The notes beneath the pieces are model-generated. The model was given only the letters and a program-made list of their open reading frames with translations, was not told where the DNA came from and made no database searches. Of a DNA stretch of 62,940 nt, positions 36,524-55,704 are shown piece after piece; position 1 is the first letter of the stretch, and each line of letters starts with the position of its first letter. The translations under genes were made by a program, and so were the position numbers. Origin of the DNA: Ylistrum balloti (taxonomy: Eukaryota). The stretch spans positions 1 to 62,940 of the forward strand of contig NW_026783079.1 of the NCBI RefSeq assembly GCF_031769215.1. The letters run 5' to 3'.

Positions 36524-36527
36524 ATCT

Positions 36528-37688: not shown

Positions 37689-37753
37689 ATTCGGTAAATC
37701 TTTCTAAAAATATCAGGGCAAACAGTAGCGAAGTATTAAGTAACCCTCATATC

Positions 37754-38563
37754 TTACGTATCTTTTTTAACAGATGCATCTGTTAAATTTTGTTCTACAT
37801 TTGCTGCGTCTAAAAATGCAGGACGCTCGCCAGCACCATGGGCAGTAATGCTGGTTCCACTTAGATAGCTGGCAGCATCTGAAGCTAAGTAAAGGCAAAT
37901 GCCTGCAATGTCTTGAGGTAGAGCTAAACGGCCTAGTGGTACAGTTGCAGCGACAGCGGCAATACCGTCTTCATCACCATAATGAAGATGAGATTGTTCT
38001 GTCAAAATCATGCCGGCTGTAATGGCATTGACTCTAACTTTAGGAGCCCATTCTACTGCCAACGATTGTGTTAAATTGAGTAAACCTGCTTTGGCTGCGC
38101 CATAAATTGCTGTACCTGGGGAAGGGCGCGTGCCGCTAACACTAGCGATATTGATAATACTTCCACCGTTTTCCTGTTGTTGCATCAAGGTATTTGCTGC
38201 TTGAGCACAGTAGAGTGGCCCAAGCAAATTTAAGGCAACAATTTTTTCAGAAAACCGTGGCGACATATCATCTGCTAAGGCAAAAGGTGTGCCTCCTGCA
38301 TTATTAATGAGGACATCTAAACGTTCGTAACGGTCTTTTATTTGTTGAATCGCTGATTCTATTTGTTGTGAGTCACGTACGTCCATGGCAATAAACGCTG
38401 CTTGGTTATCGCCAAAACTTGGTAGAGTTTCGGGCTTATTACGGCCGCTAACGATAACCGTTGCACCAGCCTGTAAGAATGCTTCAGCAATACCACGTCC
38501 AACACCTTTTGTACCGCCTGTGACCAAGATAACCTTAGCTGAGAAATCAAAATGGATGGTCAT
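37754..38563 (-). CDS. Short-chain dehydrogenase, resembling the mycobacterial steroid-cluster SDR Rv3549c
   Basis: TGGTKGVG, NNAGG, YGAAKAG, EWAPKVRVNAI, ATVPLGRLA. Confidence 0.85.
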   Translation of the reverse strand: MTIHFDFSAKVILVTGGTKGVGRGIAEAFLQAGATVIVSGRNKPETLPSFGDNQAAFIAMDVRDSQQIESAIQQIKDRYERLDVLINNAGGTPFALADDMSPRFSEKIVALNLLGPLYCAQAANTLMQQQENGGSIINIASVSGTRPSPGTAIYGAAKAGLLNLTQSLAVEWAPKVRVNAITAGMILTEQSHLHYGDEDGIAAVAATVPLGRLALPQDIAGICLYLASDAASYLSGTSITAHGAGERPAFLDAANVEQNLTDASVKKDT

Positions 38564-38570
38564 CGTGATG

Positions 38571-39059
38571 CTACGAGTTTCCTACCGTGTGGTAAGCACG
38601 GCGATAGTAAATAAGTGGTTGTTGCGTATCATCTGCAGCTGCTTCAATAACACGACCAATCGCAATGCAGTGGTCACCTTGAATGATAAGGTCATGAACG
38701 TCACAGGCCAGATAAGCCGCGCAATCAGGGATAATGGGTTGGTCATTTGTCGTTAACTTGCCTGCATACCCATCAAAATCTGGTGTTGGTTCGCGCCCGG
38801 GACGTGCAAAACTATTGGATATCTCTTCCTGTCCATGGGCTAAAATACTAACGGCAAATTGCTGAGATTCTTTTATCATTGATGGCAATCGGTTGGTACT
38901 AGCGAGACAAACAAGGACTAAAGGCGGTTCTAAGGAAAGTGAACTAAAGCTTGAAGCTGTCAGGCCATACATGTTGCCATCTAATTTTGTGCTGACAACT
39001 GTAACTCCTGATGCCCAAGAGGCGAGTGCTTGTTTAAATGCGTCTTGAATGGAAGCCAT
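38571..39059 (-). CDS. hsaB: Flavin reductase (HsaB-like partner of HsaA)
   Basis: FKQALASWASGVTVV, GLTASSFSSLSLEPPLV, GDH, PLIYYR. Confidence 0.7.
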   Translation of the reverse strand: MASIQDAFKQALASWASGVTVVSTKLDGNMYGLTASSFSSLSLEPPLVLVCLASTNRLPSMIKESQQFAVSILAHGQEEISNSFARPGREPTPDFDGYAGKLTTNDQPIIPDCAAYLACDVHDLIIQGDHCIAIGRVIEAAADDTQQPLIYYRRAYHTVGNS

Positions 39060-39065
39060 TGCTGT

Positions 39066-40208
39066 TTAATATCCTTTTAGTGTTGCTAAGCGGTTTTTAT
39101 GCCAGGCAGCATCGCCAAATAGGGTAGCTGCTGCACGAGCCCGTTTAAAGTAAAACCCAATATCATATTCATCTGTCACACCAACACCACCATGCATTTG
39201 GATACCTTCACTGGTAATTCGTTCAAAGGTGTCAGTCATTTTTGCTTTTGCTAGAGAGGCGAAGAGTGCAAGATCTTGATTTTTATTTCCCGCTGCTGCA
39301 GCTGCTGTTAAAACCGCAGATCGTGCTAAGGATAGATCTACAAATAGGCGCGCAGCCCGATGTTGTAATGCCTGAAAGGCTCCAATTGGCTGGTCAAATT
39401 GCTGGCGTTCTTTTAAATAATCCAGTGTTAAATCAAAAGCTGCTTGTGCAGCCCCCAGCATCTCAGCCGATAGTGCAATCGTTGCGAGATCAAAAATAGG
39501 GTCAAGTAGCGTTGCTGCCTCATTTTCTGACCCTAAACGTGCGCTCTCTTTTACGATTATATTTGTACATTCGATGATGGCGGTATTGCGGCCATCAATT
39601 TGGTGCTGCCTGGTTACCTTTAGGCCCGTCTGATCTTTTGGGACAAGAAATAGTGTCAGACCATCGCGGTCTTGAGTCTGGCCACCTGTGCGAAATAACA
39701 TAATATAGGTATCACTTATATGGCCGTCTAAAACGTGTGTTTTACGGCCGTTTAGCGTGTAGGTATCCCCTTCACGTTTGGCAGTCGCCTCAATATGGTA
39801 GCGATTATAGTGACTTTCTTGTTCTTGGTGGGCAAGGGTTATGATCAGGTTGCCGGTAGCAAGTTTTGGCAGGAATTCTTGACACAGCGTTTTATTGCCA
39901 GCCATTTTTAAGAGTTCCGTTGCTAGAATAGTCGTTGATAAAAGGGGCTCTGGCATTAATTTACTACCAGTCGCTTCTAAGAGTAAGCAAACTTCAAAAA
40001 AACTTAAATCTGCGCCACCATAGGTTTCCGGAATTGCCAGTCCTAAAAAGCCTAACTCTGCTAATTGTTGCCAAAGTTTTGGGTCATAGCCTGGTAAACT
40101 GCGGTCGTCACGGTAACGTCGTAGCGCCTCAATATCTACTTGCTCTTGAACAATTTTGGTGATGGTTTCAACAAGTAATTTTTGTTCTGTTGTTAATATC
40201 GTGTTCAT
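39066..40208 (-). CDS. Acyl-CoA dehydrogenase (likely beta subunit of a heteromeric pair)
   Basis: WQQLAELG, YLKERQQFDQPIGAFQALQHR, QMHGGVGVTDEY. Confidence 0.88.
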   Translation of the reverse strand: MNTILTTEQKLLVETITKIVQEQVDIEALRRYRDDRSLPGYDPKLWQQLAELGFLGLAIPETYGGADLSFFEVCLLLEATGSKLMPEPLLSTTILATELLKMAGNKTLCQEFLPKLATGNLIITLAHQEQESHYNRYHIEATAKREGDTYTLNGRKTHVLDGHISDTYIMLFRTGGQTQDRDGLTLFLVPKDQTGLKVTRQHQIDGRNTAIIECTNIIVKESARLGSENEAATLLDPIFDLATIALSAEMLGAAQAAFDLTLDYLKERQQFDQPIGAFQALQHRAARLFVDLSLARSAVLTAAAAAGNKNQDLALFASLAKAKMTDTFERITSEGIQMHGGVGVTDEYDIGFYFKRARAAATLFGDAAWHKNRLATLKGY

Positions 40209-40215
40209 ATGACAT

Positions 40216-41412
40216 TTATACCGACGGTAACCCTAAAACACGTTTGGCAATAATATTAAGCTGAATTTCTGAACTGCCACCTTCAATTGTACTGGCGCGG
40301 CTGCGTAACCAATCTCGTGTTGTCGCCTGTTCTTCGTCTGTAAATCCAGGACCTTCCCAACCTAGTGCTTGTGGGCCTGCGATTCGTGTTGCTAGATCAA
40401 AACGACGTTGTTTGAGTTCGCTGCCACATAATTTTAAGATTGAGCTTTCAGGGCCTGGTGCGGCACCTGCTGCCAACGTTTGCTGAATACGCTCGGTGGT
40501 TAAACCGTAGCACATTTCATCAATAGCGTAGTTGACAATGTCGCAGCGCAAAAACGGATCTTTCAGTGGGCCTTGTGGCGTATTTTGGTAGGTACGGGTA
40601 GCTTCAACGAGCTTCATTTCAGTACCAGTAAGTTGGGTACCAATAGATTTGCCAATCGTTGTACGCTCATAGCCTAGTAAGGCTTTTGCAACTTGCCAAC
40701 CGCTGTTTACCTGACCAACTATATTGTTGACATTAGCTGTCGCGTTATCTAAGAAAACTTCGCAAAAAGGTGAACTACCGCTAATCAAGGGAATCGGGCG
40801 TACAGAGATAGCATCTTGCAACATGTCAACCAAGATAAAGGTGATACCTGCTTGTTTTTTAACGGTTTTATCTGTACGGGTTAAACAGAAAATCCAGTCA
40901 GATTTATCGGCGTGGGAGGTCCAAACTTTTTGCCCGTTGATGATGACCTTATCGCCATCAATCTCAGCTGTTGTTTGCAAGCCAGCTAGATCAGAACCAG
41001 CTCCTGGTTCTGAATAACCTTGACACCAGCGGGTTTCGCCAGAAACAATTTTTGGTAAATGTTCTTTTTTTTGGGTTTCTGTACCGTAATCAAGTAGGGT
41101 TGGTCCAATCATCACCAGGCCAAAGCCCACAAGCGGTGGTGGTACTTTAAGACGCTCTAATTCTTGTTCAAGAATCTCTGCTTCATCGTGTGTTAAACCG
41201 CCTCCACCATACATGGTTGGCCAAGTTGGTGCTGTAAAGCCTTTTTCGAGACTCACCTCAAACCAGCGTTTGACGTCCGCTTCAGGCTCTGGGTGCAAGC
41301 GGCCGCCCCAAAAGCCGTCAAAGCGGCCTTTGCGTGTGCCATAAAGAGACTGCGGCACATTCGCTTTTAGCCAAGCTTGCAGGTCTTTACGAAATAGATC
41401 TAAATTGGCCAT
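40216..41412 (-). CDS. Acyl-CoA dehydrogenase (likely catalytic alpha subunit)
   Basis: WCQGYSEPGAGSDLA, NGQKVWTS, TIEGGSSEIQLNIIAKRVLGLP. Confidence 0.9.
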   Translation of the reverse strand: MANLDLFRKDLQAWLKANVPQSLYGTRKGRFDGFWGGRLHPEPEADVKRWFEVSLEKGFTAPTWPTMYGGGGLTHDEAEILEQELERLKVPPPLVGFGLVMIGPTLLDYGTETQKKEHLPKIVSGETRWCQGYSEPGAGSDLAGLQTTAEIDGDKVIINGQKVWTSHADKSDWIFCLTRTDKTVKKQAGITFILVDMLQDAISVRPIPLISGSSPFCEVFLDNATANVNNIVGQVNSGWQVAKALLGYERTTIGKSIGTQLTGTEMKLVEATRTYQNTPQGPLKDPFLRCDIVNYAIDEMCYGLTTERIQQTLAAGAAPGPESSILKLCGSELKQRRFDLATRIAGPQALGWEGPGFTDEEQATTRDWLRSRASTIEGGSSEIQLNIIAKRVLGLPSV

Positions 41413-41421
41413 ATTTGGTGT

Positions 41422-42420
41422 TTAAGCAGGTGCTCTGTTAGACGTTGGAGCTGTCGAAGCTTCGGAATAAAACTGTTTATACCATTTGCGTAATTTCATA
41501 ACAGGGCCGTCGTCACCGCATAAAAGTGGCACATCACGGTAACATTTGTTTTCCCAAATTTCGATATCTTCTAGAAAACCTGTGGTTAAGTTATCAATAT
41601 ACCCCTTAGAAAAGCTTTCGGTCTGTTTTGGGTCAGTACCTTTTTTGAGCATGACACCAAAGCGTAAATCTAAGCTATTTGCGTCGACCATTGTATGGGC
41701 ATTGATTAAGCGGCTTTCTAAGAAACCATTCATCACAGAAATTTGAAAGCCAGGGCCGTAATACGTTGCTGTTAGGTCGAAATAATCCTTACCGCCACCA
41801 CGGGGGTAAGCAACCCCTTTGTTATATTGAATCGCTTTATGCTCATTAAAATCATTGGAAAATTCTTCAATAATTGTGCCATGTACAGGTGCAAAATGGG
41901 CAATATCAACAACATTTTCGACGATTTCACGAGAATGGGTCTTGATATGAATTTTACTATGTTCCCAGTAGGTCCATTCTTCGGATTCAGATTCTGGCAG
42001 TAGTGGAATTTCAAAATCAGGTGCCTTGCCTTCGGGGTCAAACCAAAGGAAGATAACACCATTTTTTTCTTGTAACAGCCAAGTTGTTGTCCAAGAGCCA
42101 CTTGCTGCTCGTTTTGGGATATCTTGGCAATAAGGTATTTCTGTACACTCGCCTTGTCCATTAAACCGCCAAGAATGAAATGGGCATTCTAGGGTGTCTT
42201 CAATTACTTTGCCTTTACCTAAGTCCATCCCTAAATGTGGGCAATAGGCATCAATGACATGAAGGTCTCCAGATTGACCGCGAAAACAAACCAGCCGATG
42301 GCCAAAATAGGTCATCGATTTGACGTCCCCAGGTTGATATTCATTGGAAAACCCAATTACAAACCAACCGCGAGGAAATCCCTCTATACGATCTTTACGT
42401 CGTTCTGTACGTTGTTCCAT
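41422..42420 (-). CDS. kshA: Rieske oxygenase, 3-ketosteroid 9-alpha-hydroxylase KshA-like
   Basis: FPRGWF, Rieske CPH..CPFH, mononuclear-iron ENVVDIAHFAPVH, DIEIWENK, DGPVMKLRKWYKQFY. Steroid-cluster context. Confidence 0.7.
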   Translation of the reverse strand: MEQRTERRKDRIEGFPRGWFVIGFSNEYQPGDVKSMTYFGHRLVCFRGQSGDLHVIDAYCPHLGMDLGKGKVIEDTLECPFHSWRFNGQGECTEIPYCQDIPKRAASGSWTTTWLLQEKNGVIFLWFDPEGKAPDFEIPLLPESESEEWTYWEHSKIHIKTHSREIVENVVDIAHFAPVHGTIIEEFSNDFNEHKAIQYNKGVAYPRGGGKDYFDLTATYYGPGFQISVMNGFLESRLINAHTMVDANSLDLRFGVMLKKGTDPKQTESFSKGYIDNLTTGFLEDIEIWENKCYRDVPLLCGDDGPVMKLRKWYKQFYSEASTAPTSNRAPA

Positions 42421-42427
42421 AATCGCG

Positions 42428-42622
42428 TTACGACTCTTCTAAACGGATTGCTGCCCGTGGGCAATTTGCAACAGCTGATTCAAGCTGTTCACGTAGGGAT
42501 TCATCGGGATTTTCATTTAGAACGGTTAACGTGTCGTCTTCTTCTACGCGAAAAATCTCGGGTGCGATTTGTTCGCAAATGGCATTTGCTTCACAGGAAT
42601 CATAATCTATGATAATTTTCAT
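42428..42622 (-). CDS. Small [3Fe-4S]-type ferredoxin
   Basis: CEANAIC...CP (CxxNxxC, with Asn at the second Cys position). Confidence 0.88.
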   Translation of the reverse strand: MKIIIDYDSCEANAICEQIAPEIFRVEEDDTLTVLNENPDESLREQLESAVANCPRAAIRLEES

Positions 42623-43257
42623 GCAGCCTCCTCACTAGTCTGTTGTGGGCGTAACGATAAACCATGACGTTCTTCTAAATGTGCAGCGATTTTGTTGGCT
42701 AACTCTTCTGCTGCTGGCACAAGTGCTGGTTCGATCATCGCATTGACCATCGGTCCCATCGGGCCGCCAGCTTCCATGGCCAATGTAAAGGTTAGCTCTG
42801 TGGCATTATCTTGAATTTCAGAAGCGTCAAGTTGTTTGCGTTCTGTTGTTTCATTAAACCGTTTAAATAACAAGCGAAATAACCAAATCATAAAACGTTT
42901 GATGAGGCCTAGGCGCTTTGGGGCTTTGTTTTGTTCTGATGATTCTGTTTGTGTTGGGGGGGCACCGTAAGGGTACATTGTGAACTCGCCATTACCCTCA
43001 AGAGGCTCGGAGACGCCTTTTAAGGTAAAAGTTACTTTTTCTGGGCCTTGCCACTCTGTAATGTGTACTGCAAACTCAATGGTGCGTTGTAAAATGCCCA
43101 CATCTCCTTTGAGTGTCCAGGTCGAATCGGTCTCTGATTGCACCTCATGGCTTTGGTAGCCGGTTACAAAGGGTGCCCAGTTATTCATATCCTGGACAAA
43201 ATCCCAGATTTTGTCGCGATCTAAGTTTAGAACGGTACTGTATGTTGCCGCAGGCAC
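42619..43257 (-). CDS. SRPBCC/CoxG-family ligand-binding protein
   Basis: IWDFVQDMNNWAPFVTGY. GTG start overlaps the upstream TAG (TAGTG). Confidence 0.75.
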   Translation of the reverse strand: MPAATYSTVLNLDRDKIWDFVQDMNNWAPFVTGYQSHEVQSETDSTWTLKGDVGILQRTIEFAVHITEWQGPEKVTFTLKGVSEPLEGNGEFTMYPYGAPPTQTESSEQNKAPKRLGLIKRFMIWLFRLLFKRFNETTERKQLDASEIQDNATELTFTLAMEAGGPMGPMVNAMIEPALVPAAEELANKIAAHLEERHGLSLRPQQTSEEAA

Positions 43258-44918
43258 TAGAGAATGCCACACATATGTTGTGCCGCAACGTAGCCCCACG
43301 TCATATTACGTAAGTTCGACAGGCCACTTTGGTAGCCAGCCCCGGTATCTAGAGGTGCTGCCGCATTACCACAGGCATACAGGCCTTCAATCCCATGACC
43401 ACGTACATGTTGTACTTGGCCAGTGGCTGTGGTTTTCAGACCAACACAGTTGACACCAACACCAACTGGAATCAGCTTAATACCGTAATAAGGTGCTTTA
43501 TTGAGTGGGCCCATATTGGGGTTAGGGCGATCACGGTCACCAATAAACTTGGCAGCCCAAGGATAGGTGCCACGACCAAAGTCTGGATCTGTTTCACCAT
43601 CAGCAAAGCTGTTAAAGCGTTCTAGCGTTTCAACAAAATTATCGGCATCAATCCCCAGTTTTTCTGCTAATTCCCGCGGCGTGTCGGCTTTGACAATCAT
43701 TTCATCTGGGATTTGCATACCGGGTAAAAAGGTGGCAAAGCTATATTTTTCGCGGTAATTGCTATCAAAAATAAGGTAGGGGGGGTAGTTGGTATGTTGT
43801 TGTTTGACCCCGTCCCAGCCATGGACTTTCGGTAAGTATTCACGGTAGAAGGATTCGTCACAGAACCGCTTGCCTTCATCGTTGACCCAAATGGCATGGG
43901 GGTAACCGCCTTCCCATGAAGCGCGGCATAGTGGGTGCCCATCGTGTTCTTCACCAGGGATGGTATAGCCAAAAAACATACCTAAGTTATAGCTTGGTAC
44001 GCCACCAAGGGATGCGCCAACTTCACCACCAAGGACAATGTTATCGCCATGTAGATGAGGCTGACACATCGATTTCCATTCTGGCAGTCCTTCAAATTGA
44101 ATCGCCATTTCTTCATTCCAGTCATAGCCACCCACACCAAGCAGTACACCTTTATTTGCTTTGACAAAAAAGTCATTGCCATCAGCAGCTTCGGCGCGTA
44201 CGCCAATGACGCGACTGCCTTCTGTAATGAGTTCTCGCACGGGAGTTTCGACAAACGCTTGTGCGTTTGTGCGGTCAATCAGCGCTGCTTTGACGAAATA
44301 GCCCATCATACCCGGGCCCATCCCCCGTTGATCCGCACCAATTTGTTTGCCCATATGAGCAAAATCCCATTTGGTAACACAGGAAACACTGCCCCATTCA
44401 AACAAGGTGTCATGGTTGATGCCGGGCGGCATATGTGGGGTTAAATAGGTCTTTTTTTGCCATTCTTTTAGGTCAGGGCCATTAAAGAGTTCAACTTCTA
44501 GGTAGCGGCCTTCTGCAAGGGTACCTGGTGCATGGGGGTAATGGTAATCGGGAAAGCCTTTGATGGTTTTCCAGGCAATACCGGCTTTTTCGCCTAAATA
44601 CTCTGCTGCTTCACGGCCTTTATCAAATAAAATACGTTGTAGGGCTTTGTTGGCATAACCGCCAGCTAAGAAATCTAAATAGGCAAAGGCTTCTGTTTCG
44701 TTATCTTCTGTGCCCTCGGCAAGCATTTTGTAATTGCAGGGGACAAAGACCTCACCACCAGAGTAGGCACACACACCGCCTAATTTGGGGGCTTTTTCTA
44801 AGATTGCCACCTTTAGACCATTGTCCTGGGCAACGATTGCTGCACTCATGGCTCCTAAACCGGAACCGGCAATGACAACATCGACTTCTAAATTCCACTG
44901 TGCGGGTGCTGTGGCCAT
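43257..44918 (-). CDS. FAD-dependent 3-ketosteroid dehydrogenase-like (KstD/delta4 family)
   Basis: IAGSGLGA, EKAPKLGG..AYSGG, PDYHYP, DPDFGRG, GLYACGN. Confidence 0.75.
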   Translation of the reverse strand: MATAPAQWNLEVDVVIAGSGLGAMSAAIVAQDNGLKVAILEKAPKLGGVCAYSGGEVFVPCNYKMLAEGTEDNETEAFAYLDFLAGGYANKALQRILFDKGREAAEYLGEKAGIAWKTIKGFPDYHYPHAPGTLAEGRYLEVELFNGPDLKEWQKKTYLTPHMPPGINHDTLFEWGSVSCVTKWDFAHMGKQIGADQRGMGPGMMGYFVKAALIDRTNAQAFVETPVRELITEGSRVIGVRAEAADGNDFFVKANKGVLLGVGGYDWNEEMAIQFEGLPEWKSMCQPHLHGDNIVLGGEVGASLGGVPSYNLGMFFGYTIPGEEHDGHPLCRASWEGGYPHAIWVNDEGKRFCDESFYREYLPKVHGWDGVKQQHTNYPPYLIFDSNYREKYSFATFLPGMQIPDEMIVKADTPRELAEKLGIDADNFVETLERFNSFADGETDPDFGRGTYPWAAKFIGDRDRPNPNMGPLNKAPYYGIKLIPVGVGVNCVGLKTTATGQVQHVRGHGIEGLYACGNAAAPLDTGAGYQSGLSNLRNMTWGYVAAQHMCGIL

Positions 44919-44960: not shown

Positions 44961-44989
44961 ATAATAGAACACGTTTCACTGCGCTGCAA
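44961..44989 (-). promoter_or_regulatory. Sigma70-like promoter of the leftward steroid operon
   Basis: Minus strand TTGCAG-N17-TATTAT. SD AGGAG at 44932-44928. Confidence 0.55.
44965..44978. promoter_or_regulatory. KstR-type operator, left
   Basis: TAGAACACGTTTCA matches TnnAACnnGTTnnA exactly and overlaps the spacer and -10 of the promoter above. Confidence 0.72.
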
Positions 44990-45114
44990 ATAATCTGGGA
45001 GTTTTTGATTTGATATGGGGGTGGGGATTTTGTTTAGAATGGTTATGTGGGGAGAGAGTTAAGGGGGGAATGGGAGGTAACTTTTGGGTTGTTAGAGCTC
45101 TTAAGGAGACAATA

Positions 45115-46638
45115 GTGAAATCTGTGCTTGATAATCTTGCTAAAACTATTGATAGGGCATCCACTGAAAGAGATATTGATGTATTAAATGATTCTATTTT
45201 AAAAATCGAGGAGCTTCTAAGTCGAGAATTATCTCCGTTTGAAAAAGCTCAGCTCTATTTCTTCAGTGCAAATTGTTATTCAATGAAGAGAATCATTAAT
45301 GGAGATGTCTATGGATGGGCCTGGGAAGATGAAAATTTAGAAAAAGAGATATCTTATCTCAGGTACTCCTTAGCGGAATGTAAGTCTATTCCGTTCAAAA
45401 AAGATGGATCTGATTTAAGATTTAGGGTCGAAACGAATTTAGCTAATGCCCTAAACCATGTCGGACGTTTTGTTGAAGCTCTTGAGTCTTGGGGAAATGT
45501 TCTAAAGGATTCTCCTGAATACGCAATGGCTGTCGGAAACAGAGGGCATTGCCTTTTTTGGTATGCCAAATACTTATATGATCCAGGGCATCAATCTATT
45601 TTTCTGAATGAAAGCTACCAACAGATAAAAAGTGCATTAGACATTGGTGTAGAAGAACATGCAAAAAATGGGATGTGTAACTTGCTAAATTACCTTAAGT
45701 CATTGAATAACTGGAATGAGTTCGAATTTTATCCTGAAGAGGTCTCAAGAGGTAGGTCGAAGCTTGAGCGTTCCTATCGCACCTGGTGCATTAAAAAAAG
45801 GTTATTTTTAAATCCGCTTAATGATATTTGGAAACATGATATTGTCGCGAACGATATACTTACTTTTCCCTCTATTATTACACCTATAGTGGATCCAGAT
45901 AGTAACAATATATTTCCAGAGGTCTATGGCATATACAATCAGCTCAAACAGGAATTTGTATCTGCCCGCTATATTATGTTTGAAGCAATAGAGGAGTCAG
46001 AAAGTAGATTACATTTTTCAGATAAACGAGTAAAGCTATACGATATGTTAGATTATCGAAAATATCGATTATGGATAGAAAAACTAAAAATGGCTTTTCT
46101 ATCAGCGTATGCAATTTTTGACAAGATAGCGTATCTAATTAACGAGCATTGGCAGCTGTCGGTCGATACCCAGAGAGTCCAGTTTAATACGATATGGTAC
46201 AAATCAGTTAATCGTGGAAAAGGACTTTCTAGTCACTTTTCTGATTATGATAACTGGCCTCTCAGAGGCCTTTTTTGGCTAAGTAAAGATCTATACTTTA
46301 AGAACAACGAGAATAGCCCTATCGAGCCGGATGCTCGTCTTCTTAATCATATAAGAAATCATATTGCTCATAAATATCTTTGTGTATACGATAGGGTTTG
46401 AGTATACGATAGGGATTTAGATTTTAAGTGCTCTAGACAAAAAGGTAAGAATCATTTGGCATTTCGAATTACTGATGACGAATTTAAGTCTCAGTCAATA
46501 AAACTATTGAAGCTAGTTCGTAGTGCGTTAATTTATTTGTCTTTGGCAGCCCATAGCAAATCATCAGAAGAAAATATTAGAGAAAGGCGGATAATTAGAA
46601 TGGATCTCTATGAAATTGAAGATTCATTTAGGCTGTAG
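45115..46638 (+). pseudogene. LA2681-like HEPN-domain protein with TPR-like N-terminus and an in-frame TGA at 46399-46401
   Basis: FLNPLND, NQLKQEFVSARY, FDKIA, NWPLRGLFWLSKDL, RNHIAH (RxxxxH). The C-terminal helix KLLKLVRSALIYLSL is in the same frame after the stop. GTG start has SD AAGGAG. Confidence 0.78.
46381..46416 (+). repeat. 18-bp imperfect tandem repeat containing the HEPN stop codon
   Basis: TGTGTATACGATAGGGTT / TGAGTATACGATAGGGAT (16/18 identical). Confidence 0.8.
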
Positions 46639-46759
46639 CTTTAATAACGGAAGAAAAAAAGGATTGTTATATATCTACCTCTTGAAAGTTGTTTTTTATC
46701 TTGCAAAATCTATTTAAAATTGACAAAATGTAAACAAGTCGAAAACATGTTGATTGTCT

Positions 46760-47266
46760 ATGAATTATAAAGTTGTCCTCATTACTGTACTGACGATGCT
46801 TCCGTCATTGGCACTGGCCAGTGATAAAAGTGATCAGACGATCTCATTTGAGCAACGAGATAGAGATAATATCGAGCAAGTTGCAACAGATGTATATGCG
46901 ATAGATAAGCGTCTCATTCGTTTAGAGCAACGTTTCGATGTAATAGACGAGCGTTTTACATTTGTTGATCACCGTTTTAAGGCAATTGATCATCGTTTTG
47001 ATGCGGTGAATCAGCGTATTACAGATCTCAAAGATTCAATGCAGCAGCAGTTTCGTGATATTCGTGCTCTGCTTTATGTGCTACTGGCCGGTATGTTTAC
47101 CTTGGTTGGGTTTATTCTTTGGGACCGTCGTACAACCCTTGCGCCTGTGCAACGATTGCAAAGAGACCATGACGAGCAACTAACAAGCGTGCGAAACGTA
47201 TTACTCGAATGGGCTGCGGATCAACCAAAGCTTGCAGCAACGCTGAAGCGTTTTAATATCTTGTAA
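46760..47266 (+). CDS. Exported coiled-coil protein with C-terminal TM anchor
   Basis: Signal peptide ..SLALA, heptad RFxxxD repeats, TM followed by WDRRT. Confidence 0.65.
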   Translation: MNYKVVLITVLTMLPSLALASDKSDQTISFEQRDRDNIEQVATDVYAIDKRLIRLEQRFDVIDERFTFVDHRFKAIDHRFDAVNQRITDLKDSMQQQFRDIRALLYVLLAGMFTLVGFILWDRRTTLAPVQRLQRDHDEQLTSVRNVLLEWAADQPKLAATLKRFNIL

Positions 47267-47421
47267 TCTTTTAAATAGTTAAGTCAAAAGATCAGTATGC
47301 TGCTAAAAATGCTGCTACTGATATGGTTCTTTTGCGCTATGGTTCTCCTCTATATTAATGCTATGTTTCTGCTACGTAGGTTAAGACATCTATGAATGCA
47401 ATGTACATAAAAAAATAGAAC

Positions 47422-47435
47422 TAGAACGTGTTTCA
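47422..47435. promoter_or_regulatory. KstR-type operator, right
   Basis: TAGAACGTGTTTCA matches TnnAACnnGTTnnA, 61 bp before the hsaA start. An extra TAGAAC half-site lies at 47416-47421. Confidence 0.72.
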
Positions 47436-47496: not shown

Positions 47497-48696
47497 ATGG
47501 CTGTAGCTGCACACACGTTAAATATTCCAACTCATGATGAACTTGTTTCCCGTGCACGAGATCTGGCGCCAAAGCTAAAAGAGCGGGCAGAGGCCGCAGA
47601 GGCTGCACGCTGTGTGCCTGAGCAAACGGTCGCAGAAATGCAAGAAGCTGGTTTTTTTCAGGTGCTACAGCCCAAAAAATGGGGCGGGTATGAGTGTGAA
47701 CCACGTACTTTTTTTGATATCCAAATGGAACTGGCGCGGGCCTGTCCATCAACAGCCTGGATTTATGGTGTTATTGGTATTCATCAATGGCAGATGGCTT
47801 TATTTCCTGAAGAGACACAACAAGAGGTTTGGGGAGAGGATCCTCGTGTACTGATTTCTTCCTCCTATATGCCTGTTGGTAAGGTCGAGCATACCGATGG
47901 TGGTGTGATTTTAAGTGGTCGTTGGGGGTTTTCTAGTGGCTGTGATCATTGTCAGTGGGTGTTTGTTGGTGGTTTTATTCCACCTAAAGATGGTGAAGGC
48001 TATCCTGATATGGTGACTTTTTTGGTACCACGTAGCGATTATGACTTTGATGATGACTGGCATGTCTCTGGTTTAAAAGCGACAGGTAGTAAGACGGTTA
48101 TTGTTGATAAAAAGTTTGTGCCTTGGCGTCGAATTCATAAATTTAGTGATGGATTTAAACAAGATAGCCCCGGTCATGCGGTTAATGATGCACCGCTATT
48201 TCGTCTCCCTTTTGGGCAAATTTTTGTTCGGGCGGTTTCTACAGGGACTATTGGGATGTTACAAGGTGCGTTAGATACCTACATCGAGGTGCAAAAGGAC
48301 CGTGTCCAACGTGGTAATGGTGAAGCCGTCTCTCAGCAAGCAAATGCGCAACAGGCGGTTGCTCATGCTGCAGCAACAATTGATATGTTAAAGCTCATAC
48401 TCTACCGCAGTTTTGATGAAATGATGGATTATGTGAGGCGCGGTGAAAAGATACCTGTTGAGCGTCGTGTTCATTTTCGTTATCAGTCCGCGTTGGTTGT
48501 TGAGTCTTGCTTAGAGGCTGCGACGAAATTATTAAACGAAAGTGGCGGTTCTGGGATCTTTTTAACCAATCCAATCAATAGCTATTTTCAAGATATACGT
48601 GCCGCGCGCGGACATTATGCCAATAATATGGATAAGCCTGGTAAAAACTTAGGTAGTGTCTTAATGGGCTTAAAAAATACAGATTTCTTTATTTAA
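47497..48696 (+). CDS. hsaA: Flavin-dependent monooxygenase oxygenase, HsaA-like
   Basis: AGFFQVLQPKKWGGYE, ACPSTAWIYGV, GRWGFSSGCDH, WHVSGLKATGS, FQDIRAARGH. Confidence 0.82.
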   Translation: MAVAAHTLNIPTHDELVSRARDLAPKLKERAEAAEAARCVPEQTVAEMQEAGFFQVLQPKKWGGYECEPRTFFDIQMELARACPSTAWIYGVIGIHQWQMALFPEETQQEVWGEDPRVLISSSYMPVGKVEHTDGGVILSGRWGFSSGCDHCQWVFVGGFIPPKDGEGYPDMVTFLVPRSDYDFDDDWHVSGLKATGSKTVIVDKKFVPWRRIHKFSDGFKQDSPGHAVNDAPLFRLPFGQIFVRAVSTGTIGMLQGALDTYIEVQKDRVQRGNGEAVSQQANAQQAVAHAAATIDMLKLILYRSFDEMMDYVRRGEKIPVERRVHFRYQSALVVESCLEAATKLLNESGGSGIFLTNPINSYFQDIRAARGHYANNMDKPGKNLGSVLMGLKNTDFFI

Positions 48697-48719
48697 ACGT
48701 AATCTAAAGGCCTCTAATA

Positions 48720-49631
48720 ATGACTGAAATTAAACAACTAGGCTACCTTGGTTTTGAGGTTGCCGATCTGAAAGCCTGGGAGCATTTTACAACCGACGTT
48801 CTTGGGTTAGGGCAAAGCCAACACTTTGCAAATGGTGGCTTTGCGCTACGTCTAGACGAATATCAACAACGTTTTATCATTCAGCCAGGTCAGGCAGATG
48901 ATCTTGTTTGTGTTGGCTTAGAAGTTGAAAATAAGGAAGCACTGACAGCGGTAATTTCTCGTGTACAGGCTGCGGGAATTGCTGTAGGCGAGGGCGACAG
49001 CAAACTGGTCGAGCAACGCCAAGTTGAGGCATTAACAACCTTTAAAGAGCCTGGTGGTGTGCAGTTTGAGGTATATTATGGGCCGCAAATGGCGGCGGAG
49101 CCATTTCAGTCGCAGGTGGTGGCTCATGGTTTTAAAGCTGGTGCCCTTGGTCTCGGTCATTTTGTTTTACGGGCTGGTGATTTAGAAGCATCACTAAAGT
49201 TTGTGACGGATGTTTTAGGATTTCGCTTAAGTGATCGTATTATTTGTGATATTGGTGGTTATCATGTCAATATTGCTTTTACGCACTGTAATCCACGGCA
49301 TCATTCGCTGGCCCTTGGAGAGAAATTGCCTAAACATATCCATCATTTTATGCTTGAAGTCAATGATATTGATGATGTCGGCCAGTGTTGGGACCGTGTT
49401 GTCAATGAAGGAATCACGGTTTGGAATGCTATTGGCCGGCATCCCAATGATCGTATGCTATCTTTTTATGCAGAAACCCCGTCAGGCTTTCAATTTGAAT
49501 TTGGTTGGGGGGGACGTGAAATTTTAGATGATGATACTTGGGATACTTATGTTTATGATCGTATTAGCGATTGGGGGCATGAACATCCAGCTCAAATGTT
49601 TAAGAAGATGTTTAAAAAACAGAAATCGTAG
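48720..49631 (+). CDS. hsaC: Extradiol (meta-cleavage) dioxygenase, HsaC/BphC-like
   Basis: LGYLGFE, LGLGHFVL, CNPRHHSLA, HHFMLEV, GRHPNDRMLSFY..TPSGFQFEFG. Confidence 0.8.
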   Translation: MTEIKQLGYLGFEVADLKAWEHFTTDVLGLGQSQHFANGGFALRLDEYQQRFIIQPGQADDLVCVGLEVENKEALTAVISRVQAAGIAVGEGDSKLVEQRQVEALTTFKEPGGVQFEVYYGPQMAAEPFQSQVVAHGFKAGALGLGHFVLRAGDLEASLKFVTDVLGFRLSDRIICDIGGYHVNIAFTHCNPRHHSLALGEKLPKHIHHFMLEVNDIDDVGQCWDRVVNEGITVWNAIGRHPNDRMLSFYAETPSGFQFEFGWGGREILDDDTWDTYVYDRISDWGHEHPAQMFKKMFKKQKS

Positions 49632-49675
49632 CAGCGCATTACCAACAAATAGACTAGGAAAATTAGAGACAAACA

Positions 49676-50515
49676 ATGACTGTAGTAGCCGCAGTGCCAG
49701 AAGGCAAATACGTTGATATTTTTGACGGTCACAAAATCCATTACCACGAAGCCGGTGAGGGCTTTCCTGTTATTTTTATTCATGGTAGTGGGCCTGGAGC
49801 CAGTGGTTGGAGTAACTTTAAAGGCAATTATGAAACCATTGCAAATTTAGCTAACTGTCGTTGCTTTGTGCCTGATTTGCTCGGGTATGGCTATTCTTCG
49901 ATGCCAGAAGAAGCGACCTTTACCTACGACGATTTAAAAAACGGTATTCAAGAATTTGCGAAGCAACTAGGGCTTAAGGAATATGCACTCGTTGGCAACT
50001 CGATGGGCGGCGCAATTGCGATTACCTTAGCACTAGAATGTCCTGAGCAGGTCAAGCAGTTAATTTTAATGGCACCTGGCGGCTTAGAAGCTAAAGAAGT
50101 TTATATGGAGATGAAAGGTATACGTACAATGATTCGGGCCATGTATGCGCCAGAAGGTATTACCCGTGAGTCGATGCGTAAAGTTTTTTCTCTACAATTG
50201 CATGACGCCAGTTTGATCACCGATGACATTATCGAAGAGCGGTTTCAGATTGCAGAGCAGCAGCCAAGAGGTATGTTCGAGAAAGTTATTGTTCCCAACC
50301 AAGCAGGTCAGCTTGCTGAGTTACAAATGCCTATTTTAGGGTTTTGGGGCGTAGATGATCAATTTTGTCCTGTTAGTGGTGCGATGATTGTTGCCAAAGA
50401 AGCTAGCCAAACGAAAATGACGATGCTAACAGAATGTGGACACTGGGTGATGGTGGAACATGAAGCGTACTTTAATCAGCAATGCGCAGATTTTGTGCGG
50501 CAAGAGACGGTGTAA
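49676..50515 (+). CDS. hsaD: Meta-cleavage product hydrolase, HsaD/BphD-like
   Basis: HGSGPGASGWSNF, GNSMGG, CGHWVMVE. Confidence 0.8.
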   Translation: MTVVAAVPEGKYVDIFDGHKIHYHEAGEGFPVIFIHGSGPGASGWSNFKGNYETIANLANCRCFVPDLLGYGYSSMPEEATFTYDDLKNGIQEFAKQLGLKEYALVGNSMGGAIAITLALECPEQVKQLILMAPGGLEAKEVYMEMKGIRTMIRAMYAPEGITRESMRKVFSLQLHDASLITDDIIEERFQIAEQQPRGMFEKVIVPNQAGQLAELQMPILGFWGVDDQFCPVSGAMIVAKEASQTKMTMLTECGHWVMVEHEAYFNQQCADFVRQETV

Positions 50516-50520
50516 AGACG

Positions 50521-51324
50521 ATGGCCCTAACAGAAGATAAAATTCGTTTTTATGGAGATGCCTTGTTTCAGGCATTACAAACACGCACAACCCTAAAGCC
50601 GCTGACCTCACAAGATAACTTAACCGTCGATGATGCCTATGCCATCTCTAAACATATGATTGCTTGTCGTGTCGAGGCCGGCGAGCGCATTATTGGAAAA
50701 AAAATTGGTGTTACCAGTGCACCTGTGCAAGATATGCTGAATGTTCGTACACCGGACTTTGGGTTTTTAACCGATGCAATGCACTATGAGCAAGGTCAAG
50801 AGATGCCCATTAGCAGTAACCTGATTCAGCCCCGCGCTGAGGGTGAATTGGCGTTTCGTTTGGCTAAAGATTTAACGGGTCCGGGTATTACGGCAGAAGA
50901 TGTACTGGCTGCTACCGATAGTGTCATGCCTTGTTTTGAAGTTGTTGATTCACGCATTGATAATTGGCAAATCAAGTATGAGGATACCGTTGCTGATAAT
51001 GCTTCTTCGGGGTTATACATTGTCGGAGAGCCTGTTTCTCCGCGTGGCATTGATTTGGCGACAGCTGAGATGGTTGTTGAAAAAAACGGCCAATTTCTAA
51101 GCCGTGGTAGTGGGGTTGAGGCTTTAACTGGAGAGCCAAAACTGGGCACACCTGTTAATTGTGTTGCTTGGCTTGCAAATACACTTGGTCATTATGGTAT
51201 TGAGTTACAGGCAGGAGATGTTATTCTTTCTGGTTCACTTGTTCCCCTAGAGCCTGTTGTATCCGGAGACCATATGCAGGTCACTATTGCTGGAGTTGGT
51301 ACATTGGGTGTACAGTTTGTCTGA
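50521..51324 (+). CDS. hsaE: 2-hydroxy-dienoate hydratase (HsaE/MhpD)
   Basis: GKKIGVTS, PDFGFLTD, QPRAEGE, EVVDSRI, VADNAS, ILSGSLVP. Confidence 0.82.
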   Translation: MALTEDKIRFYGDALFQALQTRTTLKPLTSQDNLTVDDAYAISKHMIACRVEAGERIIGKKIGVTSAPVQDMLNVRTPDFGFLTDAMHYEQGQEMPISSNLIQPRAEGELAFRLAKDLTGPGITAEDVLAATDSVMPCFEVVDSRIDNWQIKYEDTVADNASSGLYIVGEPVSPRGIDLATAEMVVEKNGQFLSRGSGVEALTGEPKLGTPVNCVAWLANTLGHYGIELQAGDVILSGSLVPLEPVVSGDHMQVTIAGVGTLGVQFV

Positions 51325-51481
51325 AAATATGAAGTATGTATATAGAGGCCTGATGAGTTGCTTTACTGCTACGCAGCCTTCGAGGATGTTTATTATATTG
51401 ATCTCGGAATTGCTTTGTAGTAAGACAAATAATCACCCTTATTTTTGTAGATGAATGAAAGTTGATTAAAGGTATGTTTTT

Positions 51482-52360
51482 ATGACAAAAATTAAAGCTG
51501 CTATTATCGGTTCCGGTAATATTGGTACAGATCTTTTATATAAAATGCAGCGTAGTGAAATACTCGAGCCTGCTTGGATGGTTGGTATTGATCCAGATTC
51601 TGATGGATTAAAGCGCGCTGCTGGTATGGGGTTAAAAACGACCTACGAAGGTGTTGATGGGCTTGTACCTCATATTCAGGATGACCAAATTCGGATTGCT
51701 TTTGATGCAACATCTGCTTATGTTCATGCAGAAAACTCACGCAAGGTCAATGAGCAAGGTGTTGTGATGGTTGACCTTACGCCTGCAGCGATTGGTCCCT
51801 ATTGTATTCCACCAGTGAACTTACAAGAACAAGTTGGTTCTAAGGTTATGAATATTAATATGGTGACCTGTGGTGGACAGGCTACGATTCCAATGGTTTA
51901 TGCGGTTAGTCGTGTACAACCAGTTGCTTACGGGGAAATCGTCGCAACGGTTTCCTCAAAATCTGCTGGTCCGGGTACACGTAAAAATATTGATGAGTTT
52001 ACGCGTACAACTGCAGGAGCTGTCGAGAAATTAGGTGGGGCGAAACAAGGTAAAGCGATTATTATCATTAATCCTGCAGAACCACCACTGATTATGCGTG
52101 ATACGATTCATTGTTTAACCGAAGAAGAGCCAGATCAAGCAGCGATTACTCAGTCTGTGCATGACATGATTGCGGCAGTGCAGCAATATGTTCCTGGTTA
52201 CACCCTAAAAAATGGCCCCGTTTTTGATGGCAAACGCGTTTCAATTTTTTTAGAGGTTGAAGGCTTAGGCGATTATTTACCTAAATATGCAGGTAACCTT
52301 GATATTATGACAGCTGCGGCTTTGCAAGCTGGTGAACTTTTTGCCAAAGAAATGTCATAA
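51482..52360 (+). CDS. hsaG: Acylating aldehyde dehydrogenase (HsaG/MhpF/DmpF)
   Basis: [53 protein letters not shown]. Confidence 0.88.
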
Positions 52361-52433
52361 AGACTGTAAAACCAAGATATAAATTCAGATTATTATTTGG
52401 AATTGTTGAAAAAATATAAAAAGTGAGACTGAT

Positions 52434-53465
52434 GTGGACATAACAGGTAAACAGGTCACATTGCATGACATGTCACTACGAGACGGTATGCATGCCAAAC
52501 GTCATCAAATAAGTATCGAGCAAATGGTACAAATCTCAACAGCGTTAGATGCCGCAGGTGTACCACTTATTGAAGTAACGCATGGAGATGGCATTTCTGG
52601 AGCCTCTGTGAACTATGGGTTTCCTGCTCATAGTGACCGTGAGTACCTTGAGGCTGTTATTCCCAAAATGAAGAACGCTAAAATTTCAGCACTACTGTTA
52701 CCTGGAATTGGGACGGTTGATGATCTTAAAATGGCTTATGATCTAGGGGTTTCAACCATCCGTATTGCGACACATTGTACGGAGGCTGATGTTGCTGAGC
52801 AGCATATTGGTATGGCTTCAGGGATGGCCGGTTTAGATGTTGTTGGGTTTTTAATGATGGCACATATGATTCCTGCGGAGCAGCTGTTAGAGCAAGCTCT
52901 ATTGCAGGAGAGTTATGGTGCAAATTGTATTTATGTTACGGATTCTGCTGGTGCAATGTTGCCTGATGAAGTTACAGAAAAAATTGCACTATTTCGTCGT
53001 GAACTTAAACCAGACACGGAAGTAGGTTTCCATGGTCATCATAATCTCGGTATGAGTATTGCCAATTCTCTTGCAGCAGTCGAGGCTGGAGCTATTCGTA
53101 TTGATGGCTCTGCCGCTGGTCTTGGTGCTGGTGCTGGTAATACACCGCTCGAAGTGTTTGTAGCCGTTCTTGATCGGATGGGGGCAACTCATGGTGTTGA
53201 CCTTTGGCAACTAACAGACGTGGCAGAAGATCTTATAGTGCCGCTGATGGATCAAGCTATCCGTATTGATCGTGATTCTTTGGTCCTTGGTTATGCTGGC
53301 GTGTATTCTTCCTTTTTACTCCATGCCAAGCGTGCTGCTGAGAAATATGGTCTTAGCTCACGTGATATCTTAGTTCGTCTAGGGGAAATGAAGACCGTTG
53401 GAGGCCAGGAAGATATGATTGAAGATGTCGCATTAACAATGTGTAAAGAACAACAATCTGCATAA
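52434..53465 (+). CDS. hsaF: 4-hydroxy-2-oxovalerate/hexanoate aldolase (HsaF/DmpG)
   Basis: [43 protein letters not shown]. Confidence 0.88.
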
Positions 53466-53478
53466 ACGGTAGTTATCT

Positions 53479-55194
53479 ATGACATCTACAGAGCATTCGT
53501 GGGATAAAGAAGTTGATTTACTTGTTGTTGGTTCTGGCGGTGGCGGTATGGCCGCGGCGCTTCGTGCCCATGATTTAGGTAGTGAGGTTCTGCTGATTGA
53601 AAAGGGTGACCTCTATGGCGGCTCAACAGCAATCTCTGGTGGTGTTTGTTGGGTTGGGAATAACCGGCATATGCCAAAAGCTGGTATTCAAGACAGTGAT
53701 GAAGAAACTCTGACCTACCTTAAACACATTACCAAAGGGGAGGTTGCTGAGGAAAAAATTACGACCTATGTTCGTGAATCTAATCGTGTTATCAACTATT
53801 TACATGACAACAGTCAGGTAAAATTTACAGCTGTTGCCAAGTATACAGACTATTATCCAGAAGCGCCCGGCGGTAAAATGGGCGCAAGGTCTATGGAATG
53901 CCCTAGGTTTAATGCAAAGGTTTTAGGACCACGTTTAATGGAACTGCAGCGGCCTCATATTCAATCTCAGATTATGGGTAAATTTGGCATTATGGCTGGA
54001 GAAGCGCATCAAGCGCTTGTTGGCAACTGGCGGACCAAGTTTTTTATGGTCTGGCAATTTATCAAATATCTGCTGCGTTCTGGTGCCCGTAAGCGTTGTG
54101 GTAGAGACACAAGTCTTACAGCAGGTAATTCGCTGATGGCGCGTTTTTTTACCTCGTTAATTGACCGTAATGTTGAGATGTGGAAGGAGTCTTCTGCTCA
54201 GGAACTTATTATTGAAGATGGGCATGTTCTTGGTGCACTTGTTGAAAAAACGGGACAAAGCTTACGCATTCGGGCACGTCAAGGTGTTGTACTTGCTGCT
54301 GGTGGATTTGAACATAATCAAGACATGCGAAACCAGTACCAGAAACAACCGATTAAGACAGAGTGGAATGTTGGTAATACATTAAACGTTGGTGATGGTA
54401 TTAAGCTAGGGCTTACTGCTGGTGGTACGTTAGACCTAATGGATGAAGCGTGGTGGACACCGATTTGTCAGGTGCCAGGTAAAACGCCAGCTTTTGTTTT
54501 AGTTGTTGAAAAAAGTCTTCCCCATGGCCTTTTTGTTAATAATCAAGCCAAACGTTTTACCAATGAAGCCGCGCCTTATATTGATGTTGTTCATGGTATT
54601 TATGGTGATGATGATGGACAAGGTAAAACGATTCCAGCCTGGCTTATTTTTGATGCTACCTTCAGGCAGCGGTTTCCTGTTGGGCCAGTACCTCCAGGGT
54701 ATGCTGCTTCAGATGGCGTGATGAAACGGTTTTTTAAGAATGGTTTTTTAACGAAAGCGGACAGTTTGACAGCACTGGCTGAAAAAATAGATCTCGATCC
54801 TGTGCAATTACAAGAGACGATTAATCGTTTTAATACCAATGCGCGTCAAGGGCTAGATCCGGATTTTGGCCGTGGTAAGAGTGCCTCTGATCGCTATTAT
54901 GGTGATCCTCGTGTGAAGCCCAATCCTTGTTTAGGTCCTGTTGAAACTGCACCATTTTATGCGATTCGTATCTATCCTGGTGATTTAGGTACCAAAGGTG
55001 GTCTCATTACCGATACGCAGTCACGTGTACTACGTGAAGATGGTACAGCAATTGCTGGCCTTTATGCGACAGGCAATTGTAGTGCTTCTATGATGGGGCG
55101 TACGTATCCTGGGGCAGGGGGAACAATCGGTCCTGCGATTACTTTTGGCTTTTTAGCGGCAGAAGCTGCTGCTCAGGATACAACCGGAGGTTAA
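53479..55194 (+). CDS. kstD: 3-ketosteroid delta1-dehydrogenase
   Basis: VVGSGGGGM, GGSTAISGG, YTDYYPE, DFGRG.SA.DRYYGDP, PGDLGTKGGL, YPGAGGTIG. Confidence 0.8.
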   Translation: MTSTEHSWDKEVDLLVVGSGGGGMAAALRAHDLGSEVLLIEKGDLYGGSTAISGGVCWVGNNRHMPKAGIQDSDEETLTYLKHITKGEVAEEKITTYVRESNRVINYLHDNSQVKFTAVAKYTDYYPEAPGGKMGARSMECPRFNAKVLGPRLMELQRPHIQSQIMGKFGIMAGEAHQALVGNWRTKFFMVWQFIKYLLRSGARKRCGRDTSLTAGNSLMARFFTSLIDRNVEMWKESSAQELIIEDGHVLGALVEKTGQSLRIRARQGVVLAAGGFEHNQDMRNQYQKQPIKTEWNVGNTLNVGDGIKLGLTAGGTLDLMDEAWWTPICQVPGKTPAFVLVVEKSLPHGLFVNNQAKRFTNEAAPYIDVVHGIYGDDDGQGKTIPAWLIFDATFRQRFPVGPVPPGYAASDGVMKRFFKNGFLTKADSLTALAEKIDLDPVQLQETINRFNTNARQGLDPDFGRGKSASDRYYGDPRVKPNPCLGPVETAPFYAIRIYPGDLGTKGGLITDTQSRVLREDGTAIAGLYATGNCSASMMGRTYPGAGGTIGPAITFGFLAAEAAAQDTTGG

Positions 55195-55197
55195 ATA

Positions 55198-55674
55198 ATG
55201 ACGATATCTGATTTAATTCAAGCACCGCTACAGTTTGATTTGTCCTGCACACTTGCAGCCACCCCAGATGAGGTTTTTACATTTATTACAGATTTTGAGG
55301 GAATGCCAGGTTGGATGCCACTGATGAAGCGTGTTGAGGTTGATAATACAAAGGCACAGGCACCTGGTGAAGTTGGAGCTGTACGGGTCATTTATCCACC
55401 AGTTGGTAGCGCTACCTATGAAGAAGTACGCGTTTTTGAACGCCCAAATCTACTGGCCTATAGTGCTAGCGATGACTCTTTAATGGGGATGTATACAAAC
55501 CATATCGGCGTTTTAACTTGTGAAGCTACAGGGGAAGAGCATACGCTATTTTCCTGGCGTACCTACGCTGATCCCGGTAAAAATGTGATTATGCGCTTTT
55601 TTGGGCGTTTGGTGTTTGGCTATGTTTTTCGTCATAGCTTTAAGAAATTAAAGCAGCGTTTTCCGGTTTCCTGA
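55198..55674 (+). CDS. SRPBCC (polyketide cyclase/START-like) protein
   Basis: PDEVFTFITD...PGW, GAVRVI. Confidence 0.75.
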   Translation: MTISDLIQAPLQFDLSCTLAATPDEVFTFITDFEGMPGWMPLMKRVEVDNTKAQAPGEVGAVRVIYPPVGSATYEEVRVFERPNLLAYSASDDSLMGMYTNHIGVLTCEATGEEHTLFSWRTYADPGKNVIMRFFGRLVFGYVFRHSFKKLKQRFPVS

Positions 55675-55704
55675 GTAGATATTGTTAATAAACTAGGAGC
55701 AGAC

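Follow-up and report, generated by a model that had tools for sequence, protein, structure and literature searches.

The closest described counterpart of the elements considered here is the KstR (Rv3574) system of Mycobacterium and Rhodococcus. The KstR palindrome, TAGAAC(N2)GTTCTA, partly overlaps the promoter -10 element (Kendall et al. 2007, PMC1995591). Sites of M. tuberculosis KstR that were positive in the electrophoretic mobility shift assay (EMSA) include one between Rv3545c and Rv3546, and two copies of the motif lie between Rv3570c (hsaA) and Rv3571 (PMC1995591). KstR has so far been treated as an actinobacterial regulator, and two surveys confined the 9,10-seco pathway to Actinobacteria and Proteobacteria. 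A second point of reference is the operator of PsrA in Pseudomonas, C/GAAAC-N2-4-GTTTG/C (PMC13104628). Here we describe two 14-bp candidate operators, box 1 and box 2, in a stretch of 62,940 nucleotides (contig NW_026783079.1, assembly GCF_031769215.1, filed under Ylistrum balloti; hereafter the window) that carries a full steroid ring-opening cluster of a Dadabacteria-like genome. Both boxes probably function as operators for a TetR repressor of the KstR family whose gene lies elsewhere in that genome, because they are under selection in the repressor position and because, in a sister group, the same elements occur alongside KstR homologs.

Twin boxes before two steroid operons and their conservation

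A scan of the 62.9-kb window with the degenerate consensus TnnAACnnGTTnnA matched box 1 and box 2 only, with 0 mismatches each (Table 1). The two 14-mers, to which an earlier note on this DNA had drawn attention, were found where it placed them; they are identical at 12/14 positions, and the difference is confined to the central dinucleotide. The exact 12-base frame TAGAAC-NN-GTTTCA likewise occurred in the window at these two places only. The earlier note had called the operators perfect. That is correct for the degenerate consensus, but the palindromes themselves are imperfect: the half-sites of each box are TAGAAC and TGAAAC, and 10/12 specified bases agree with the full palindrome TAGAAC(N2)GTTCTA. 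One of the EMSA-positive M. tuberculosis sites, that between Rv3545c and Rv3546, has exactly the 14-mer of box 1 (PMC1995591). The boxes precede, respectively, a kstD-like/kshA operon and an hsaACD operon, i.e. steroid catabolic genes of the KstR regulon type. A match to the consensus alone proves nothing, since the degenerate form was at chance level in the window: two matches were observed against a shuffle mean of 1.99, in line with the roughly two per 63 kb previously estimated, and 59/100 shuffles gave at least two. The consensus was therefore dropped as stand-alone evidence. The significance of the boxes comes from their conservation.

The closest relatives of the window's HsaA in a 5.8-billion-protein index were 70-75 % identical, and one of them came from an NCBI metagenome-assembled genome (MAG) named Candidatus Dadabacteria. 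Our Dadabacteria set comprised four loci on the contigs of three relatives (L153/L154, L155 and L156; 87 kb, GC 40-62 %), and kshA and hsaA were divergent in all of them. The box on the kshA side read TAGAACACGTTTCA in L154 and L155 and TGAAACACGTTTCA in L156, whilst that on the hsaA side read TGAAACGTGTTTCA in L153/L154, L155 and L156. Four boxes were present in L156, because an open reading frame (ORF) of 399 aa without a Pfam family separates its two promoters. In alignments of the kshA side (A1) and the hsaA side (A2), the boxes were the only invariant runs, mean column identity being 62 % and 50 %, respectively. Box 1 together with its -10 flank agreed with L154 at 20/20 bases and with L155 at 19/19, and was the only significant local match between the intergenic DNA of the relatives and that of the window. 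The strict motif occurred 10 times in the 87 kb against 0.14 expected (~70-fold), with a maximum of two in any of 200 shuffles. Conservation in relatives was one of the points on which the earlier note had let its proposal stand or fall, and the boxes were indeed kept at orthologous promoters while the flanks diverged. Judged by these comparisons, the boxes are under purifying selection. Among the additional boxes of L156, one (4588-4601) precedes the 399-aa ORF, and a third box lies just 3' of this ORF within a 22-bp perfect, GC-clamped palindrome (3180-3207), which could act as an operator, as a terminator hairpin or in both roles.

The position of the boxes relative to promoter elements was also retained. 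Box 1 was said to lie within a TTGCAG-N17-TATTAT promoter, and this is borne out when the promoter is read on the minus strand: the box occupies 12 nt of the 17-nt spacer and overlaps the -10 element by 2 nt. The promoter scan reported the same site in a TTTGCA-18-TATTAT register as well. On the kshA side of the relatives, the -35 hexamers were TTGCAA, TTGCTT and TTGACA, with equal spacing to the box in every case, and the -10 elements of the relatives were TATTAT or TTCAAT, so that the geometry of -35 element, box-containing 17-nt spacer and -10 element is conserved between the left promoter of the window and its counterparts. The hsaA side of the relatives showed a TTGACA-N17-TTCAAT promoter whose elements were overlapped by the box; the -35 hexamers were TTGACA and TTGCGG, with the distance from the box kept. 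In the window, the called HsaA product has 399 aa (P0001), which puts the hsaA start at the second ATG, 47497, downstream of a GAGG ribosome-binding site. Box 2 consequently ends 61 nt ahead of the start, which rules out the idea that both boxes stand exactly 46 nt from their start codons.

An extra TAGAAC half-site beside the right box had also been reported. It is present, directly abutting box 2, and was absent in every relative examined. An 8-bp repeat shared by the region of this half-site and the left box was within chance expectation. Abutting half-sites of this sort do occur in the family, given that L159 (2295-2320, equivalent to L160 9932-9957) contains two canonical boxes in tandem, with a 2-base overlap, between divergent fadD-type and P450 genes.

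Distribution of the boxes and candidate repressors

After Dadabacteria, the next relatives of the window's HsaA were 57-61 % identical and belonged to Myxococcota-type MAGs. Protein clusters neighbouring these HsaA sequences were named Myxococcota, Bradymonadia, Deltaproteobacteria and Polyangia, and one of the loci encodes a FadL-type outer-membrane channel. The Myxococcota-type loci displayed canonical TAGAAC-NN-GTTCTA boxes and TGAAAC variants before hsaA, kstD, P450, fadD-type and SDR genes, and the strict motif was found 14 times in 105 kb (59-72 % GC) against 0.01 expected. The divergent hsaA region of one locus, L162, repeated the twin layout, with TAGAACGTGTTTCA and TGAAACACGTTTCA 23 nt apart. 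Across the Dadabacteria and Myxococcota-type loci, all boxes were intergenic or at the 5' edge of a gene, beside kshA, hsaA, kstD, P450, fadD-type or SDR genes; placement was taken from called-gene tables, a count based on long ORFs being unreliable in high-GC DNA. In contrast, 152 proteobacterial hsaA loci (1.59 Mb, from species-representative genomes and JGI metagenomes) contained the loose motif seven times against 5.75 expected. This lack of enrichment rules out the motif as a general trait of hsaA loci.

In a tree of 136 HsaA sequences, the nine loci that have boxes at steroid promoters grouped as a single clade (SH-aLRT 99). Dadabacteria formed a subclade within it, and it stood apart from all proteobacterial clades. 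The box-bearing label was also given to two sphingomonad loci; each had one site, far from hsaA, and these sites were taken for chance occurrences. The tree was built without actinobacterial sequences and so says nothing about the donor.

KstR homologs were identified beside the boxes of Myxococcota-type loci. The TetR of L162 follows the hsa operon (Table 1), its recognition helix is closely similar to that of KstR, and the twin boxes described above are in the adjoining hsaA control region. In L167, a KstR-like gene is divergent from a kshA-ACAD-ACAD series (ACAD, acyl-CoA dehydrogenase), with a perfect box between them. In L169, a TGAAAC-type box, TGAAACATGTTTCA, lies 123 nt upstream of a KstR-like gene, and a second box precedes a ChsH2-type operon. 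On a KstR-family hidden Markov model (HMM) built from 120 family members (TetR_N plus TetR_C_20), the TetRs of L162, L167 and L169 each scored ~290 bits. The family to which the L162 protein belongs had 1,420 matches at E 1e-10 or better, mostly with TetR_C_20, and some of its members bear the JGI name cholesterol catabolism regulator. A search of the ESM Atlas for KstR-like proteins returned Myxococcota and Actinomycetota clusters only. The KstR-like gene of L162 is located between the hsa operon and genes for a squalene/phytoene synthase, a 3-beta-HSD-like protein, a Rieske protein (VanA_C) and HMG-CoA reductase (15704-21197), an order that makes sterol-synthesis-type and ring-cleavage genes neighbours.

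Several observations weigh against our interpretation of the boxes. The earlier note had proposed a search for a KstR ortholog, and neither tblastn nor the family HMM revealed a KstR homolog in the window or in any of L153-L156, the four Dadabacteria loci; none of the best 120 KstR-like proteins was labelled Dadabacteria either. Three of these proteins, picked as possible Dadabacteria KstR by name and AT-biased amino-acid composition (P0159, P0152 and P0241), were rejected, their contigs having 56-66 % GC, which is not Dadabacteria-like. At box 2, the hsaA-side -35 element is unrecognizable, the promoter scan gave no plus-strand sigma-70 promoter, and the position of the relatives' hsaA -35 element is taken up by consecutive A residues and then the extra TAGAAC. 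Lastly, the Dadabacteria boxes prefer TGAAAC and are without the C/G flanks that extend the actinobacterial and Myxococcota-type motif, so that the binding protein may have diverged or may be a different TetR.

It is accordingly worth asking whether the boxes are bound by a PsrA-type fatty-acid- or lipid-sensing TetR, or by one of some other subfamily, encoded elsewhere and not homologous to KstR. The prevailing form in Dadabacteria, TGAAAC-NN-GTTTCA, is formally compatible with the PsrA consensus, and the missing KstR homolog in the Dadabacteria loci would be explained. The TAGAAC half-sites of the window boxes do not fit that pattern, however: box 1 has retained such a half-site and matches a verified KstR site exactly, and in the sister clade the same boxes, among them TGAAAC forms, occur with KstR homologs. 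A PsrA-like protein was likewise not found, and the steroid loci of Proteobacteria, home of PsrA-type regulators, lack the motif. We consider a binder of this kind unlikely. A nearer candidate is the TetR gene at the far end of the minus-strand operon, the only one in the window and one that abuts the cluster. On the KstR-family HMM its product reached 15 bits, where true members reach ~290 bits; it matched TetR_N only in Pfam and had solved-structure matches limited to the generic helix-turn-helix, with KstR not in the top 60; its recognition helix is unlike that of KstR. It is close to an orphan, with three homologs among 5.8 billion proteins, all on ~1-kb contigs. The TetR encoded in L156 is 19 % identical to it and thus unrelated, though both genomes keep identical boxes. 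Neither box nor palindrome was seen upstream of the window's TetR gene, and the L156 TetR, which scored 31 bits on the KstR-family HMM, has an unrelated palindrome of its own. Both proteins were rejected as KstR homologs, as was the presence of autoregulatory boxes before either gene. That the TetR of the window is the repressor of the boxes is, on this evidence, quite improbable.

The remaining explanation is that the boxes are chance matches, or unbound relics that came in with the cluster. The chance-level count of the degenerate consensus and the want of a cognate repressor gene nearby would both agree with it. Against this, the boxes are invariant over lineages whose HsaA proteins are 25-30 % different and whose GC content spans 22 points, while the flanks have diverged, and the strict motif is ~70-fold over expectation; the divergence of the flanks also argues against the related loci having come by recent transfer from a single DNA segment. 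We regard this explanation as very improbable indeed. Operation of the boxes under a KstR-family repressor therefore continues to be the interpretation that we favour, and we infer a KstR homolog in this organism, its binding to the boxes and its ligand. More broadly, a KstR-type regulon outside Actinomycetota, one of two options offered by the earlier note, appears on comparative grounds to be real, because of the footprints in Dadabacteria, the identity of box 1 to an EMSA-positive site, and a sister group with canonical boxes and KstR homologs. Its operators are conserved and its sister loci have the expected homologs, but neither the window nor the four Dadabacteria loci yielded a KstR-family repressor gene.

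The steroid cluster, the insert and a possible mode of control

Features of the window, and the KstR homolog of L162, are listed in Table 1.

Table 1. Boxes, promoter, genes and operons discussed in the text (positions in the window unless stated)
Feature	Position	Strand	Description
Box 1, TAGAACACGTTTCA	44965-44978		Candidate operator of the minus-strand operon; 46 nt 5' of the kstD-like start codon
Box 2, TAGAACGTGTTTCA	47422-47435		Candidate operator before hsaA; end 61 nt 5' of the 47497 start
Extra TAGAAC half-site	47416-47421	+	Directly abuts box 2; not conserved
Sigma-70-type promoter of the minus-strand operon	44961-44989	-	-35 TTGCAG 44989-44984, 17-nt spacer, -10 TATTAT 44966-44961
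TetR-family gene	33733-34323	+	Only one in the window; not a KstR homolog; probably not the cognate repressor
Minus-strand steroid operon	34334-44918	-	Pfam and NCBIfam scans; kstD-like flavoprotein (43257-44918), SRPBCC, kshA (41422-42420), two acyl-CoA dehydrogenases, flavin reductase, SDR
Tail of the minus-strand operon	35252-37688	-	Two radical-SAM CofH/CofG-like (FO synthase type) genes and a luciferase-like monooxygenase
Low-GC insert between the boxes	45010-47266	+	34-37 % GC; HEPN_LA2681 ORF (45010-46401) and coiled-coil ORF (46754-47266)
Plus-strand steroid operon	47497-59091	+	Pfam and NCBIfam scans, hsaA start from P0001; hsaA, hsaC, hsaD, hydratase, acetaldehyde dehydrogenase, aldolase, second kstD (53479-55194), SRPBCC, ChsH2-like, isochorismatase-like, thiolase-like and fatty-acid-hydroxylase-family genes
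Serine recombinase (resolvase)	59141-59701	-	Right edge of the higher-GC steroid cluster
TetR of L162	16767-17363 (L162)		KstR homolog, follows the hsa operon; four best solved-structure matches are M. tuberculosis KstR chains (residues 2-180, E 5e-17)

The cluster (34334-59701) has 41-48 % GC against 31-40 % in its flanks. This raised GC, together with the resolvase gene at its edge, is consistent with a horizontally acquired island. The second option of the earlier note, a regulatory module imported with the cluster, fits these features and the common HsaA clade of the box-bearing loci, whilst the tree is silent on donor and direction. In the tail of the minus-strand operon, the CofH/CofG-type genes and the luciferase-like monooxygenase hint at a deazaflavin-dependent step. 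The plus-strand operon ends in a gene of the fatty-acid-hydroxylase family (58312-59091), the superfamily of sterol desaturase and C-4 methyl oxidase; a gene of the same family lies near the cluster of L156 (13721-14650), beside a TetR. A macroalgae metagenome (one sequencing run) held 7 % of the words of the window, which is too little to name a habitat.

The distance between the two boxes, measured from start to start, is 2,457 nt in the window, compared to 23 nt in L162, 51 nt in L155 and 255 nt in L154, three loci without an interruption. The low-GC insert, at 34-37 % GC against 42-48 % for the cluster, lies between the boxes of the window. No target-site duplication flanking it was identified, the 8-bp repeat mentioned above being the only one and within chance, and the promoter and terminator scan of the window gave no terminator after the coiled-coil ORF. 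The HEPN_LA2681 ORF stops at a TGA within a near-tandem 18-bp duplication (~46385-46420), its frame is open on to ~46638, and the Pfam match ends at profile position 159/204; this indicates either recent breakage of a defence-type gene or an assembly slip.

Under the control that we propose, a repressor dimer on box 1 would cover the spacer and the -10 element of the minus-strand promoter and thereby block RNA polymerase. Box 2 could block hsaA transcription in the same way or serve as a roadblock, and a steroid-CoA catabolite would free the repressor, by analogy with KstR. Ancestrally, both boxes probably lay in a single short control region between divergent kshA and hsaA, and the ~2.4-kb low-GC insert would have pushed them apart in this genome. 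It may be that hsaA is here transcribed partly by read-through out of the inserted genes, box 2 then being the roadblock.

Comparison with described systems

The mechanism itself is already known; what is presented here is its extension beyond the described phylum. A full ring-opening cluster with KstR-type operators is found in Dadabacteria, and the sister clusters in Myxococcota-type genomes have both the operators and KstR homologs. We found no report of KstR or of the 9,10-seco pathway in Myxococcota or Dadabacteria, which is weak evidence given that most subscription journals lay outside the search. Myxobacteria and Dadabacteria have been singled out for eukaryote-like sterol synthesis (Hoshino and Gaucher 2021, PMC8237579), and no other bacteria are reported to use that route. 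It is conceivable, though doubtful, that Dadabacteria and Myxococcota share an old KstR-controlled ring-cleavage module for turning over both their own sterols and those of hosts or the environment. If this were true, the KstR regulon would have to be seen as one component of a broader, exchanged toolkit for sterol metabolism and not as an invention of actinobacteria. A short operator and a defined repressor family together offer a handle with which steroid regulons can be mapped in uncultured bacteria that may be associated with animals, and for asking how pathway and switch spread between phyla.

Actinobacterial steroid catabolism has a second TetR repressor, KstR2, with the operator consensus AnCAAGnnCTTGnT, a motif unlike the window boxes. 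KstR2-type operators were not present at the steroid promoters: one exact match fell within the kstD coding region and others were scattered in unrelated genes. With up to one mismatch allowed, AnCAAGnnCTTGnT occurred 11 times in the window against three expected (0/100 shuffles reached 11), mostly in unrelated coding regions. Two adjacent sites of this type, at 25072 and 25093, are intergenic and upstream of the gene at 23616-24764.

The PsrA operator resembles the boxes as a TetR-family site with GAAAC/GTTTC half-sites that overlaps a promoter and controls lipid catabolism. It differs in a centre that is usually 4 nt in P. aeruginosa, in the sensing of long-chain fatty acids, and in having no link to steroid ring genes. 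The KstR-like TetRs of Myxococcota-type loci (L162, L167 and L169) are closer, belonging to loci of the same HsaA clade as the window. These loci share with it the twin-box hsaA layout (L162), the kshA-ACAD-ACAD order (L167) and TGAAAC-type boxes (L162 and L169), but their repressor gene adjoins the boxes, and most of the boxes are canonical TAGAAC-NN-GTTCTA. Their boxes also have the extended actinobacterial form with flanking C and G.

In contrast to the KstR system of Mycobacterium and Rhodococcus, the present host is a Dadabacteria-like diderm and not a member of Actinomycetota, the Dadabacteria half-site is mostly TGAAAC instead of TAGAAC, and the flanking C/G of the extended motif are absent. 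The mycobacterial kstR gene is autoregulated and located inside the cholesterol region, whereas the Dadabacteria cluster has no kstR gene in or near it. What the two have in common is the 14-bp palindrome core TnnAACnnGTTnnA, a box placed on the promoter -10 element, two boxes in a divergent hsaA control region, and hsaACD, kshA and kstD as targets.

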